DNA of 64,000 bases. Source: Selaginella moellendorffii. Taxonomy: Eukaryota; Plantae; Lycopodiophyta. Positions 1,067 through 6,801 of this stretch are shown in pieces. How positions within the stretch are numbered: position 1 is the stretch's first letter; every line of letters begins with the position of its first letter. A program made the position numbers and the translations under genes. The stretch is from assembly GCF_000143415.4 (NCBI RefSeq), contig NW_003314407.1:239748-303747 (forward strand), in the 5' to 3' direction. The notes below the pieces were generated by a model. It saw only the letters and a program-made list of their open reading frames with translations. It did not search any database and was not told the DNA's origin.

Positions 1067-1954
1067 ATGAGAATAGCATTAAATATTTTCATTTTACTAC
1101 TTTTATTTAAAGTTTCTAAACAAATTGAATATCAGACTGGAGTATTTGATGCTATAAGTGAAAATGTTGTACATGCTATTATAGGAGCTATTAGAAATTC
1201 AATTAATAATATACCAAATAGTATAATTCCATTAAGACAAAGTGTACATGGAGAAGTAGATGTTCAACATCCAGATAGAACTCATACATATGTTGGATTT
1301 GGTATTTTTGTATTAGAAACAATTAGAGAATTTTGTACTATAAATTCCGAAGGAGGTGTAGAATTAGGAGTTAACATAAGAAATTCACTAAATCACATTT
1401 TAGAAGAGTCTTCTGATGAGATGCTCAATTTTGCTGCCTCATTTATTATTATAAACACTGAGCATTTTTTAATTTATTATTTTGTTAGAAATTTTAATAA
1501 TCAACAACACAGAAGACAACAGATTTTAGTAAGACATTCTCAATGCTATTTGTTTTCAAGCTTTTTAATAAGTGGTTCTATCAATATGCTGCATCAATAT
1601 CTATTACCTTCACAATTTTTAATTTCTTCAAATCATAAAGCACATTTATATTTAAGCTCTGATTGTAACTTAATAGTATATATGGGTATAAAAACATTAT
1701 GGTCTTCAAATACTTCAAAAAAAGGAACAAACTGTATTCTAAGATTGCAAGAGGATGGAAATTTAGTTTTATATTCTTATGATAGTAAACCTGTTTGGAC
1801 AACAAATACTTATTGCACTTCTTATAATTGTTATAAAGCTACATATTTAGTTATACAAAATGATTGTAATTTGGTTTTATATATTGGATACCAAAAAACA
1901 TTTAGCACTAACCCTAAATTATATTCTGAATGGGATTCAAAATCTTTTTGCTAA
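1067..1954 (+). CDS. Secreted protein: signal peptide + unknown ~130-aa domain + GNA/bulb-type mannose-binding lectin domain
   Basis: Intronless ORF from ATG 1067 (MRIALNIFILLLLF). C-terminal QxDxNxVxY motifs QEDGNLVLY and QNDCNLVLY plus degenerate SSDCNLIVY. Paralog at 60413-61324. Confidence 0.85.
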   Translation: MRIALNIFILLLLFKVSKQIEYQTGVFDAISENVVHAIIGAIRNSINNIPNSIIPLRQSVHGEVDVQHPDRTHTYVGFGIFVLETIREFCTINSEGGVELGVNIRNSLNHILEESSDEMLNFAASFIIINTEHFLIYYFVRNFNNQQHRRQQILVRHSQCYLFSSFLISGSINMLHQYLLPSQFLISSNHKAHLYLSSDCNLIVYMGIKTLWSSNTSKKGTNCILRLQEDGNLVLYSYDSKPVWTTNTYCTSYNCYKATYLVIQNDCNLVLYIGYQKTFSTNPKLYSEWDSKSFC

Positions 1955-1955
1955 T

Positions 1956-2499
1956 ACATATTTTCTTTATACTTACCATTTCTGTTTCTTATATTAGATA
2001 TGTAAATTTATTAATAAAATAGTTAATCATGTTCTAATATCTTATTAAATTGTTTCTTTCATCACTGTCTTGTCTTTTAATAAGGAGAAGGTTTTAATTT
2101 TAATCATAATTACAATTTAAAATTTTCTACCTTGTTTTTATAAGTATTTAAATTTCTATATTATTAAAATTTCCAACTTGGTAGCAATTGCCTAAAAAGC
2201 ACCGCTCATGAGCAAACGATCGATGATATCAACATATTTTCTTTATACTTACCATTTCTGTTTCTTATATTATATATGTAAATTTATTAATAAAATAGTT
2301 AATCATGTTCTAATATCTTATTAAATTGTTTCTTTCATCACTGTCTTGTCTTTTAATAAGGAGAATTTTAATCATAATTACAATTTAAAATTTTCTACCT
2401 TGTTTTTATAAGTATTTAAATTTCTATATTATTAAAATTTCCAACTTGGTAGCAATTGCCTAAAAAGCACCGCTCATGAGCAAACGATCGATGATATCA
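1956..2499. repeat. Two-copy tandem repeat (1956-2231, 2232-2499)
   Basis: Near-identical units from ACATATTTTCTTTATACTTACC to GATCGATGATATCA, with one ~8-bp indel. Confidence 0.95.
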
Positions 2500-4245
2500 T
2501 CTCTCGAGCTTGCTCATCATCGAATCTAGCACAGGAAGCTCCTTGACAAGCTCTTGCCATTCAGGCATTCCCTGTAGCAGCACCCAAATCACTTTTGCTC
2601 TCTAGCCAACTAGATTAAGAAGATTTGCTTACCCGACCCGATTTGCGGATTCTCCCATCGAGCCGGAGCACAATGAAAACCTCTTCGCCACCGGTTACTC
2701 CTTCCGACTCTTGCTGCTCAAAGATCCACCTGATTGTCGTTTCCACACTCTAAACGCTCAAACAAGGTAGAAACAAGATACTCACCTCTCCCATTCTGCT
2801 TGAGAAACCACCTCCGCTACAAATCGCTTCTCACTCTCGAGCACTGCCTTCAGTGCCGCGTCCTGCGCTCGTTTTTGAAAATCATCCTGAATCACGAGAG
2901 AAAAGGGAAATTTAGGAACCACGGATTGGATAAGCTTACGCTGCCGGAGCCAGCTGCTGGAGCTTTTACGGAGCGTCCAAATCCTTTCTTCTTAGGCGTC
3001 TCGTCCTTTTTCCTCCACTCGACCGGAATCAAGAGCACGCCTCGTTGCAGGAGATCTTTGCGGTATCTCTCCGCCTTCTCCAAAGCTCCCTTGATCGACT
3101 CTTTGGTACCGGCCAATATCACCTTTCGCTCCAAGAGAACATACAAGCAAGCTTGGTTTGATATTGGAAAGAAAAAACTTCTTACCGGTCGTGTGATCCC
3201 TCGAAGTTGCACCACCTCCACGATGCGTCCAGTTCCGAGCCGGACAGGAAGCCTTGACAAAGTCTCGTTTCTTGTGATTTGAGACATTTGCGTCTCTTCT
3301 TTCTTGCTGTCCCAGATAAACAAGGACACAAAAGCCACTATACCTGTGAAAAAGCGCAACCTTGATTAGATGAAAACACACTCTCATCACATTTACCTGC
3401 GAGGTCTATTGCCAGATTCTGTGCGGTCTCCGTGACGCTTGGAGCGTCCTCTCCCCCCTGCAGTGCACGAATGAGCCTCGGGACCGTGATGAAAGTCGCG
3501 ATCCCAGCGGCAATCGTGAATGCGACGTAGAAAAACTTGCGAACGCCACGAAACGGTGCCTGGACTTCGCTGATGAGCTTTAAGTCTCTTCGGAAGCTGC
3601 TTCCAGTGTCTTCGCCACCTTTCCGAGCCTGTCCAGTGCACGGCAAAGCTCATCACTTCGGGCCAAGCAAAGATTGAGAGAGAGAGATTGGCTCAACCTC
3701 GTCCTGGAGAGCCTTGAACTCTGGAGACGCTCGGAAGGGAGCAAGGTCCGGATCATTGAGGATGACATGAAACTTGACGTTGTAATCACGCAGCGCTGTT
3801 TGCAATGCCTGTGCTGCTTTCGCGGGCTCTTCCCTGGAAACAAATGGTCACGAAAGGAGAGAAGAAACGAAAGAGTCGAAGAAAGCACGAAACCTTGAAG
3901 CATGGCAGCAAGCTTTGTTGTAGTACGCGGCCTGCGCCTCATCGAAGTTTGGATTCATGGCCAGGGCGGTATCAAACTGATGCAATGCGTCCTTCACCTG
4001 CCTAGTGAGAACAAACCAACACGTATGGAATCATCCACATCCATGGAGCTTCGCTAAAGTACCCTTCCTTTGGAGAAGAGTGACAAGCCCAGATTGACGG
4101 CGTCGGTTGCTGTTTTCACCTGTGATTCGCTTCCATCCTTGGCAGCGCGCACCCTGATCGCGATCTTGGCGCGCCCAAATGCGAGGCGACGAGGGGCGGC
4201 ACCACACCTGAGCGACACGCACCCGGAAAAACACAAGACATCCAT
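2497..4245 (-). CDS. LPA1: LOW PSII ACCUMULATION 1, chloroplast TPR/DUF3493 PSII assembly factor (multi-exon)
   Basis: Exons encode a transit peptide, VNLGLSLFSKGRV, FRRDLKLISEVQAPFRGVRKFFY, ITRNETLSRLPVRL and C-terminal MSKLER* (TGA at 2497-2499). These match remembered Arabidopsis LPA1. Confidence 0.9.
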
Positions 4246-4418
4246 CTCTCACTCTCTCTCACACACACACGCACACACACCAAAAGAAACCCTTTTATCT
4301 TTTTTTTGTGACCTCTACGAGGATCTTAGCTCGCGAGACATCGATCGTTCTTTACCTTTAGATAGAACCACACTTTCTTTACCCTTTGCTCGAATCCATT
4401 TCCAGAGATAGCAGAGTA

Positions 4419-5474
4419 ATGGCGTCCTCTCTCGTTGCAACCAGGTCGCTCCTTCTCCCGCATCAATCTTCCTCCTCTACTCGAAGAAATGGCGGCCACA
4501 TTGTAGTTTGCTCTTGCTCCTCCATGGAAGACTTCACCAGAAAAGCAGGCAAGCTCGCATTCGCTACAGTGGCGGCCACAGTCCTCCTGGCCGGGGTAAG
4601 CTCCTCGCCATAGACCATCTTTCACCTCCTCCTTCGACACAGCATTTGCCCGGTGTGGGCATTTGTGAGTTCTCTTATAGATCTTGTGTCCCTTGTCTGG
4701 CTTTGATAGGCAGCAGATGCCCGGCCGCGCCCTCGCTTCGGATCCAGCGACGAGGAGATCCGCGAATACCTGGACAAAACCCCCAGCTACGACGATCAAA
4801 TGATGCGAGCCTATCTGGACGTCAAAGGTAAGTGGACAGGAACCAAATGCCCGAGCCCCGTCACCAGCGGTGCCACCGACGGTTTCAAACTGGAACCCGG
4901 TGACTACTACGTGACCAACATGTGTTTGCAGCCAACCTCATACCAAGTCACCCGGAAGGCCGGGATTGGCGAGTTTGACATCTCGACAACGTACGAGACG
5001 AAGCTGCTTGCGAGGGTGGACGGGATCGAGGGCTCCCTGGCCGTGGCTCCAGACGGTGGTGTCAAGTTCGAGGAGAAGAAAGGGCTCAACACGGACACCA
5101 CCATCGCCAAAGTCATCGCTAGGCTTCCCGGGAAACAGGAGCTAGTGCCCTTCATGTTTGGGATCCAAGACCTGGTTGCGTCGGGTAGGCCGGAATCTTT
5201 CGGTGGCCAGTTTATAGTTCCCACAGCGACGATCCAACCGAAGAAACTGGACGTGGATGAGACCGAGCCGCTGGAGAGCACCACCACGGAGGGCAGCATT
5301 GTGTTCAAGGTGACGAGGAGCAACTTGGAAGCCAAGGAGCTGGGTGGCGAGTTCGAAACCAGCCAGCTCTCGGGCCTGGATCTACGGTCCAGATCCAACG
5401 CGGGCTTCCTCATTGGAAACAAGGAGAAGAAGAGGGTCAAGGTATCGGGCGTGTGGTATGCAAAGCTCGATTGA
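4419..5474 (+). CDS. Divergent PsbO-like (OEE1-like) thylakoid lumen protein; exons 4419-4595 and 4710-5474
   Basis: Bipartite transit peptide ending LLAG|AADA. Motifs YLDVKG..KCP, MCLQPTSY, VPFMFGIQDLVA, VSGVWYAKLD. Intron at the same position as in the neighbouring PsbO, and the spliced frame is intact. Confidence 0.85.
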
Positions 5475-5580
5475 TTGCTAAGAGATAACTCTGATAGAAA
5501 GAATGTAAAGAAAAACAGTACCATGGATTGGATATCTCAATCAAACAAAGCTAGATATCATATCCTTTGGCTTTGAAAGA

Positions 5581-5715: not shown

Positions 5716-6801
5716 ATGGCGGCATCGGTGGTAGCAGCCAAGGCCGGGCCATCGCTCCTCCAGCCCAAGCTCGATGCCTCTGCAGGATCGTCCGCCAGCC
5801 TCCGCCCGGTGTCGGTGTCCAAGGCATTTGGATTGCGCAGCAATGGAGGAGGAGCGCGCCTCACTTGCTCCATGGAGGACATTGTCAAGAGGGCCACGGA
5901 TGTGGGCAAGGTCGCCGTTGCCACTGCCGCAGCCACATTGCTCGTCGCGGGGGTAAGCGAAAGATCTCCTCTGCTGGACGGATGAATTGAGAGAATTGGA
6001 GCAAGTCTGGTAGTCATTCTCATGAATTTCCCCTGTTTTGTGATGCTCTAGACCGCCGCCGCGAATCCAAAGCGCCTCACATACGACGAGGTCCAAGCCC
6101 AGACGTATCTCGAGGTGAAAGGCAGCGGCACCGCCAACCAGTGCCCGATCCTGTCCGGTGGCGACGAAGGATTCAAGTTCAAGCCCGGCAGCTACAGCGT
6201 CAAGAAGTTTTGCCTCGAGCCCACGTCCTTCACCGTGAAGAAGGAGTCGCCATTCAAGGGTGGCGGCGATCAATACGTCGACACCAAGCTCATGACGAGG
6301 CTGACATACACGCTGGACGAGATCGAGGCCGACTTGAGCGTGGACGAGAAGGGAAACCTCAAGCTGGTGGAGAAGGATGGCATCGACTACGCTGCGGTTA
6401 CCGTCCAGCTCCCCGGAGGCGAGCGAGTTCCATTCCTCTTCACCATCAAGGAGCTCGTAGCGACTGGCTCCCCGGATGGATTCAGTGGAAGCTTTCTGGT
6501 GCCGTCTTACAGGGGCTCCTCGTTTCTAGACCCCAAGGGACGCGGTGGATCCACCGGGTATGACAATGCGGTGGCGTTGCCGGCCGGAGGCGCTGGTGAC
6601 GAGGAGGAGCTCGGCAAGGAGAACCTCAAAGATACCTCGGGGTCGACTGGGAACATCACCTTGAAGGTGGCGGAGAGTAACACCGCCACTGGAGAGATTG
6701 CCGGGGTATTTGAGAGCATCCAGCCCTCGGACACGGATCTGGGATCGAAGGCTCCCAAGGAAGTGAAGATCCAAGGTATATGGTACGCGCAACTTGACTA
6801 A
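5716..6801 (+). CDS. psbO: Oxygen-evolving enhancer protein 1 (33 kDa); exons 5716-5952 and 6052-6801
   Basis: Canonical motifs [68 protein letters not shown]. Confidence 0.97.

Follow-up and report, generated by a model that had tools for sequence, protein, structure and literature searches.

The locus described here raises the question of whether a duplicate of psbO, which encodes the manganese (Mn)-stabilizing extrinsic subunit of photosystem II (PSII), can leave the oxygen-evolving complex (OEC) and persist as a functional gene. To our knowledge, PsbO is the sole extrinsic PSII subunit present in every oxygenic phototroph, and whereas '-like' relatives of PsbP and PsbQ that act outside of the OEC are well known, we know of none described for PsbO. 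The gene in question, denoted here as PsbO-like, is from the lycophyte Selaginella moellendorffii and occupies positions 4419-5474 on the forward strand of the window, i.e., the whole 64,000-nucleotide stretch of contig NW_003314407.1 that was analysed and whose numbering is used throughout. A canonical psbO (5716-6801, forward strand) begins 241 bp downstream of its stop codon. We consider it probable (roughly 0.6) that PsbO-like encodes a functional non-OEC PsbO-like protein.

Retained and remodelled features of PsbO-like

PsbO-like is a two-exon gene of 313 codons without a stop codon or frameshift, and the spliced product of the model (4419-4595 joined to 4710-5474) is identical to the 313-amino-acid RefSeq protein XP_024522430.1, named automatically as 'oxygen-evolving enhancer protein 1, chloroplastic-like'. 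A second allele (XP_024521334.1), located on the scaffold of the other haplotype, differs at four residues. These observations agree with an initial annotation, made from the letters of the window, that had described an intact PsbO paralog in which lumen targeting, the intron position, both disulfide cysteines, and the beta-barrel were kept. Exon 1 (4419-4595; 59 codons) encodes a serine-rich chloroplast transit peptide and a thylakoid-transfer signal, and this lumen-type presequence aligns with that of canonical exon 1, with CS..MED and a hydrophobic AT.AAT.LL.AG core, ending in LL(V)AG, common to both genes. The intron (4596-4709; GT..AG) is in phase 0 at the same site in both genes, preceding by 12 nucleotides (four codons) the predicted mature boundary with its AxA motif (A-D-A and A-A-A); this is the position of the conserved psbO intron of land plants (PMC4459440). 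Exon 2 (4710-5474) encodes the last four residues of the presequence (AADA) and the mature protein, and carries the stop codon.

The mature PsbO-like protein is only 36% identical to its canonical neighbour across 257 aligned columns (18% gaps). The canonical Selaginella protein is 72-78% identical to PsbO from mosses, liverworts, ferns, conifers, and angiosperms, which places PsbO among the most conserved extrinsic PSII subunits, and even most full-length distant representatives, including that of the glaucophyte Cyanophora, are 45-53% identical to it, a level that the tandem paralog does not reach. Likewise, the Pfam MSP family (PF01716; cutoff of 25 bits) matches canonical PsbO in a single stretch at 327.5 bits, whereas PsbO-like is matched at 97.7 bits in two stretches that leave the middle of the protein unmatched. 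At the 168 columns that are at least 90% conserved in land-plant PsbO, PsbO-like is identical at 73, similar at 16, and deleted at 27; the identical columns comprise 42 of 73 in predicted strands versus 31 of 68 elsewhere. Both disulfide cysteines (codons 4848-4850 and 4923-4925, delimiting the segment 4848-4925) are kept, the second (C72) being invariant and the first (C47) nearly so in a 40-sequence alignment. Other retained motifs include part of the N-terminal YL.VKG, the VPF.F..LVASG..ESF.G.F.VP stretch, and the C-terminal GVWYA..L strand.

The changes in PsbO-like, as read from alignments to the canonical neighbour and to 96 land-plant PsbOs, include two loops. The beta5-beta6 head loop, between VPT/VPS and the next strand, comprises 48 residues in canonical PsbO and 23 in PsbO-like (ATIQPKKL...TTTEG; 5226-5294). 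In this loop, which carries SYRG...FLDPKGRG in canonical PsbO, the arginine of SYRG is absent, the aspartate of DPKGRG is replaced by glutamine and the second arginine by leucine, and a 14-residue segment is deleted. The initial annotation gave these lengths correctly, but the 23 residues are not wholly unrelated to those they replace, as it had proposed; QPKK and DVDETE resemble degenerate remnants of DPKG and GDEEE, and the loop is therefore better viewed as shortened and degraded than as a foreign insert. In the beta7-beta8 loop (5364-5432), QPSDTDLG is replaced by QLSGLDL followed by a 10-residue insert (RSRSNAGFLI; 5385-5414), so that only one aspartate of this proton-exit carboxylate loop is kept. 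GIDYA has become GLNTDTTIA through a four-residue insertion (5082-5108), TRLTYTLDE has become TKLLARVDG, and the mature N-terminus is extended by ~17 residues relative to canonical PsbO (RPRPRFGSSDEEIREYLDKTP; 4722-4784), part of this segment being predicted to be helical with low to moderate confidence. Each of these changes had been recognized in the initial annotation. The calculated isoelectric point (pI) is 5.56, versus 4.72 for the canonical protein, with 34 versus 26 lysine plus arginine residues.

Canonical PsbO (OEE1; PF01716), as represented by the neighbouring gene and by pea PsbO (5XNL chain O), and PsbO-like have in common the bipartite presequence, the intron site, the cysteine pair, the eight-stranded barrel, and the WYA strand. 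PsbO-like differs in its 23-residue head loop, in the lack of DPKGRG and PSDTDLG, in the four- and 10-residue inserts, in its 17-residue N-terminal extension, and in being less acidic. Residues D157, R151, and R161 of spinach PsbO are reportedly needed for activity or chloride retention, and their counterparts, which we take to lie in the lost segment of the head loop, would all three be gone. The functional assignment of the FLDPKGRG and DTDLG loops in the initial annotation is upheld by published structural work, in which the beta5-beta6 and beta7-beta8 loops contact D1/D2 and carry proton-exit carboxylates, with the beta5-beta6 loop also contacting CP43/CP47 (PMC7318136). In Thermosynechococcus elongatus PsbO, the loop Asp222-Ala228 contacts D1/D2 and includes the proton-exit residues Asp222-Asp224 (PMC7318136). 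Angiosperm PsbOs show full conservation of the surface that faces PSII, the beta1-beta2 loop excepted (PMC4459440), which makes the changes in the docking loops of PsbO-like exceptional.

Because both D1/D2 loops are remodelled and over half of the residues that are at least 90% conserved are changed, PsbO-like has most likely lost the ability to cap and stabilize the Mn4CaO5 cluster. By sequence and predicted fold, the protein is a member of the PsbO superfamily that appears to lack the sequence features defining a functional Mn-stabilizing subunit. It could instead be a true PsbO isoform that occupies the canonical PSII site, makes alternative contacts there via its new loops, and sustains oxygen evolution, or modulates it, in some specific tissue or condition. 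The retained presequence, disulfide, barrel, and strand motifs described above are in keeping with such a role, as are the remaining aspartate of DTD and the QPK remnant of DPKG, and the depth ratio of PsbO-like to canonical psbO transcripts varies widely between runs, which might mean condition-specific use, contig depth being an unreliable measure. However, the loops that were shortened or rebuilt are those that contact D1/D2, known isoform pairs within a species differ by 2-9% (PMC4459440) versus 64% here, and the net charge of the protein has shifted. We consider an isoform of this kind decidedly improbable.

Selection and transcription of the paralog

A gene with so many otherwise invariant residues lost might simply be a decaying tandem duplicate that has become dispensable and drifts under relaxed selection while still transcribed from a compact shared promoter region, with a stop codon yet to come. 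Such decay has a precedent in the Brassicaceae psbO pseudogene At4g37230 (PMC4459440), and it would accord with the extremely long branch of PsbO-like and with its status as a singleton without orthologs in 1.84 billion representative sequences (see below). Comparison of the two haplotypes of the PsbO-like coding sequence (CDS) identified 13 differences, comprising four nonsynonymous and nine synonymous changes at 710 nonsynonymous and 229 synonymous sites. This corresponds to a ratio of nonsynonymous to synonymous divergence (omega) of ~0.14, and under neutrality a nonsynonymous count this low would have a binomial probability of P = 0.0008. Haplotype divergence at synonymous sites (~4%), in the intron (3.5%), and in intergenic DNA (3.7%) is mutually consistent. 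With variants from the RNA contigs added, the ratio of nonsynonymous to synonymous differences is 8:9 (omega ~0.29; P = 0.01), as compared to 2:18 in canonical psbO; the higher nonsynonymous share in PsbO-like is what decay would lead one to expect, whereas neither omega value is near 1, the level that the initial annotation had associated with a decaying duplicate.

The older history of the gene points in the same direction as its polymorphism. Between PsbO-like and its canonical neighbour, nonsynonymous divergence (dN) is 0.54 and synonymous divergence (dS) is at least 1.8 (saturated), and identity at codon positions 1, 2, and 3 is 61, 62, and 41%, respectively, with 31% expected by chance at position 3. 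Divergence is thus much greater at position 3 than at the other two, contrary to what is expected of a gene in decay, and the GC content at third positions (GC3) is 74% versus 44-49% GC in flanking non-coding DNA (~46% background). When neutral substitutions were applied in simulation to the canonical CDS and the frame was checked, an open frame survived in 5% of runs with 0.1 substitutions per site, in 0.2% with 0.3, and in none of 5000 once 0.5 was reached. PsbO-like lies at a p-distance of 0.45 from canonical psbO, a divergence at which a neutral open reading frame (ORF) would be intact in 0.2% of runs or fewer, and none of its approximately eight indels shifts the frame. Conservation is also higher in strands than in loops, a further argument against decay. 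Collectively, these comparisons indicate that selection at the protein level constrains PsbO-like today and has done so throughout most of its past, several-fold less strongly than it constrains psbO.

Spliced PsbO-like contigs of ~1 kb were identified in four public runs from four studies (X1, X7, X10, and X15). The contigs span 4288-4383 to 5480-5518, ending just past the stop codon, with exactly 4596-4709 removed (splice joint 4594/4709, 114 nucleotides skipped), and their starts at 4288, 4311, 4371, and 4383 define a 5' untranslated region of 4288-4418. An unspliced fragment of low depth was also present in one run. The only label on these runs is 'RNA?', and they can be taken to derive from mRNA, since exact GT..AG joints are present in both psbO genes and the canonical contig has a poly(A) tail. 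Expression, which the initial annotation had left to be checked, is therefore observed, with correct splicing, and the ORF is open in all four RNA assemblies and on both haplotypes. The contiguous spliced transcripts from four studies, together with the presence of the same gene on two independently assembled haplotype scaffolds, refute the explanation that the gene model is chimeric or arose as an artefact of annotation or assembly, to which we assign a negligible probability.

The transcript from X10 encodes four private nonsynonymous changes in PsbO-like (V30I, K98N, S108N, and N289S), and its canonical psbO carries one nonsynonymous and ten synonymous differences. X10 may represent another accession, or a close species in which the paralog is evolving faster.

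None of the attributes of a pseudogene, namely a disrupted ORF, a lack of splicing or expression, or an omega of ~1, was found for PsbO-like, and we regard a decaying duplicate as unlikely. The description of the gene as neofunctionalized in the initial annotation is in this respect favoured, in that a live, diverged gene explains the data better than a decaying copy, while the new functions that it named (an assembly placeholder, an OEC-off regulator, or a subunit of another complex) are speculation.

Predicted fold, relatives, and possible role

An AlphaFold2 model of the mature part of PsbO-like, generated from a 40-row PsbO alignment, has a mean predicted local distance difference test (pLDDT) score of 81 and a predicted template modelling (pTM) score of 0.75. 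The barrel strands exceed 90, confidence is ~60 in both remodelled loops (residues 173-190 and 221-240; pLDDT of ~61 and ~62 for the beta5-beta6 and beta7-beta8 loops, respectively), and the N-terminal 45 residues are of moderate confidence and partly helical. All significant matches in the PDB are PsbO chains (Foldseek E = 2e-20). The model aligns with pea PsbO (5XNL chain O) at Z = 25.5 across 205 residues (3.1 A) and with 5G38 at Z = 20.4 across 159 of 172 residues (2.1 A). These results suggest that the PsbO beta-barrel fold is retained, as the initial annotation had held.

The 5G38 structure, along with 5G39, is of PsbO-beta, an engineered T. elongatus barrel from which residues 1-15 and loops 55-63, 149-192, and 220-231 have been removed (PMC7318136). 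PsbO-beta has the same barrel as PsbO-like, and two of its removed segments, 149-192 and 220-231, correspond to the pair of loops remodelled in PsbO-like; the construct shows that the barrel folds and is soluble without both of them. However, PsbO-beta is a laboratory construct without a biological role, whereas PsbO-like keeps the N-terminal region and replaces rather than deletes the loops. If PsbO-like is a constrained barrel without docking loops, it would be the natural counterpart of PsbO-beta and would provide a handle on the properties of the barrel alone, including proton buffering, proposed GTP binding, and partner binding.

Of the 5.8 billion proteins covered by a word-indexed search, only the PsbO-like protein and its haplotype allele were recovered. 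An HMMER search run exhaustively against 1.84 billion representatives returned 82 hits, every one of which was much closer to canonical PsbO, with no ortholog and no second headless lineage among them. PsbO-like is alone in its own 50%-identity cluster, its next match being canonical plant PsbO (117 bits), and a feature search of the ESM Atlas returned only MSP clusters at scores of at least 0.9. No orthologs from other Selaginella turned up, although database coverage of the genus is thin and this is weak evidence of absence within it; among the hits examined, Diphasiastrum was represented only by canonical PsbO. The named low-scoring plant clusters that were examined (Tanacetum, Panicum, Triticum, and Acacia) consist of short or partial gene models and do not constitute a family.

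Among the 120 best matches listed, only P0126, a Logan transcript from run SRR18804342, is a probable close relative of the canonical gene. This transcript (L002 151-1152) encodes a 333-amino-acid PsbO that clusters with the canonical PsbO of S. moellendorffii and has a comparably long branch (SH-like approximate likelihood ratio test [SH-aLRT] support of 85), and its source may be another Selaginella or a heterosporous lycophyte.

In a maximum-likelihood tree, the terminal branch of PsbO-like is ~3 substitutions per site, as compared to a median of 0.16. PsbO-like attaches on the land-plant side (support of 89/80), whereas finer placement fails; placing it as sister to the Selaginella canonical gene lowers the log-likelihood by 0.14 units and is not rejected (approximately unbiased [AU] test, p = 0.30). 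A scan for shared derived residues identified one position, no more than in control taxa. Given the tandem position and the common intron site, local duplication of psbO is the simplest origin, and PsbO-like would have arisen in this way in the lycophyte or Selaginella lineage. The duplication cannot be dated because synonymous sites are saturated in every comparison.

The literature broadly bears out the statement in the initial annotation that plants lack a PsbO '-like' family, with one qualification. A 2025 review of PSII extrinsic subunits considers all PsbOs to be functionally similar and describes no family of PsbO homologs (PMC12661325). A third, divergent psbO lineage does exist in the Brassicaceae (At4g37230), where it is a pseudogene in Arabidopsis thaliana, A. 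lyrata, and Brassica rapa and is expressed in Thellungiella halophila (PMC4459440). This lineage, which arose independently within the Brassicaceae, is the only literature precedent that we found for a strongly divergent extra psbO in a land plant. Our literature search returned no paper on the PsbO-like gene, and the term 'PsbO-like' was found only in an unrelated context. Papers that name PsbO and Selaginella concern the canonical protein, e.g., D8TBN9 with phospho-Ser219.

Duplicated OEC subunits that have kept their fold and lumen targeting include the PsbP-like (PPL1/PPL2) and PsbQ-like (PQL/PnsL) proteins, which act in PSII repair or in the lumenal subcomplex of the NAD(P)H dehydrogenase-like (NDH) complex. 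These families are ancient, widespread, and characterized, whereas PsbO-like is known from one species, by sequence and transcripts. Under the reading that we favour, PsbO-like would be a functional protein of low abundance that, judging from its presequence, reaches the thylakoid lumen, where it would fold as a soluble barrel as PsbO-beta does and, judging from the missing motifs, would no longer cap or stabilize the Mn4CaO5 cluster. The barrel, the new N-terminal extension, and the new loops would together serve as a partner-binding surface in another lumenal role.

It is possible, at somewhat less than even odds, that PsbO-like represents the first true 'PsbO-like' class, i.e., a PsbO barrel that has moved out of the OEC and been recruited via its new N-terminal helix and loops to another lumenal partner, whether this belongs to the assembly or repair of PSII or to a different thylakoid complex. 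By analogy with the departure of the PsbP-like and PsbQ-like proteins from the OEC, its role could more specifically be to assist, as an accessory factor, the biogenesis or repair of PSII, which as a particular claim we regard as doubtful. This would be the likeliest arena because the ancestral partners of PsbO are PSII lumenal domains and, circumstantially, because PsbO-like shares a short (~50-100 bp) divergent promoter with a gene of the LPA1/REP27 type. Were such a class to be true, all three extrinsic subunits of the OEC would have spawned non-OEC relatives. A constrained, expressed barrel without docking loops would also allow one to examine how constraint on an essential, slowly evolving subunit is escaped once its gene has been duplicated in tandem. 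If PsbO-like is instead a slowly dying duplicate, it is of local interest only.

Several observations weigh against a functional non-OEC protein. Constraint on PsbO-like is clearly weaker than that on canonical psbO (2:18), and selection was inferred from one species and few polymorphisms, with no ortholog found. In X10, PsbO-like carries five nonsynonymous and four synonymous differences. Contig depth for PsbO-like is far below that of canonical psbO in three of the four runs, although contig depth cannot rank genes. Because AlphaFold was supplied with an alignment of canonical PsbOs, its model is biased in favour of the PsbO fold, and the loss of the Mn-stabilizing function is argued from missing motifs. 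Finally, PsbO-like is known at the gene and transcript level only, and earlier proteomic studies of Selaginella were probably blind to it because the protein is present only in UniParc/RefSeq.

The surrounding locus

Canonical psbO, which is the tandem parent or sister copy of PsbO-like, comprises exons at 5716-5952 and 6052-6801, and its spliced transcript has deep coverage in each of the four runs. Its haplotypes differ by 13 synonymous changes and one nonsynonymous change in the CDS (E to G at 6167) and by a 13-bp indel (5970-5982) within its intron. A polyubiquitin gene with head-to-tail ubiquitin repeats (7265 to ~8180, forward strand) lies directly 3' of psbO.

Upstream of PsbO-like, on the reverse strand, is a divergently transcribed gene for a PSII assembly factor of the LPA1/REP27 type, with tetratricopeptide repeats (TPR) and PF11998 ('Low psii accumulation1 / Rep27'). 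The coordinates of this gene (2452-4245) are approximate, and the PF11998 match is 84.9 bits at 3338-3646 (reverse strand); the gene call for its counterpart on the other haplotype contains TPR_16 and DUF3493. The order LPA1-like, PsbO-like, PsbO, polyubiquitin is common to both haplotypes. PsbO-like is thus the upstream partner in a tandem pair of psbO genes, a setting that is central to its interpretation and that the initial annotation did not mention. The LPA1/REP27-type gene is head-to-head with PsbO-like, its start codon being ~50-100 bp from the start of the paralog transcript, such that three PSII-related genes (LPA1/REP27-type, PsbO-like, and psbO) are found within 4.5 kb. The promoter region common to the LPA1-like and PsbO-like genes contains a CT/CA microsatellite (~4246-4283) just upstream of the 5' untranslated region. 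Between 4200 and 4418, the haplotypes differ by ~40 indel positions and nine single-nucleotide polymorphisms, and promoter alleles may therefore differ. On the other haplotype, polyubiquitin is followed by a cellulose-synthase-like glycosyltransferase gene on the minus strand, and a weak B_lectin match is present in a gene call that is the counterpart of window positions 1067-1954.

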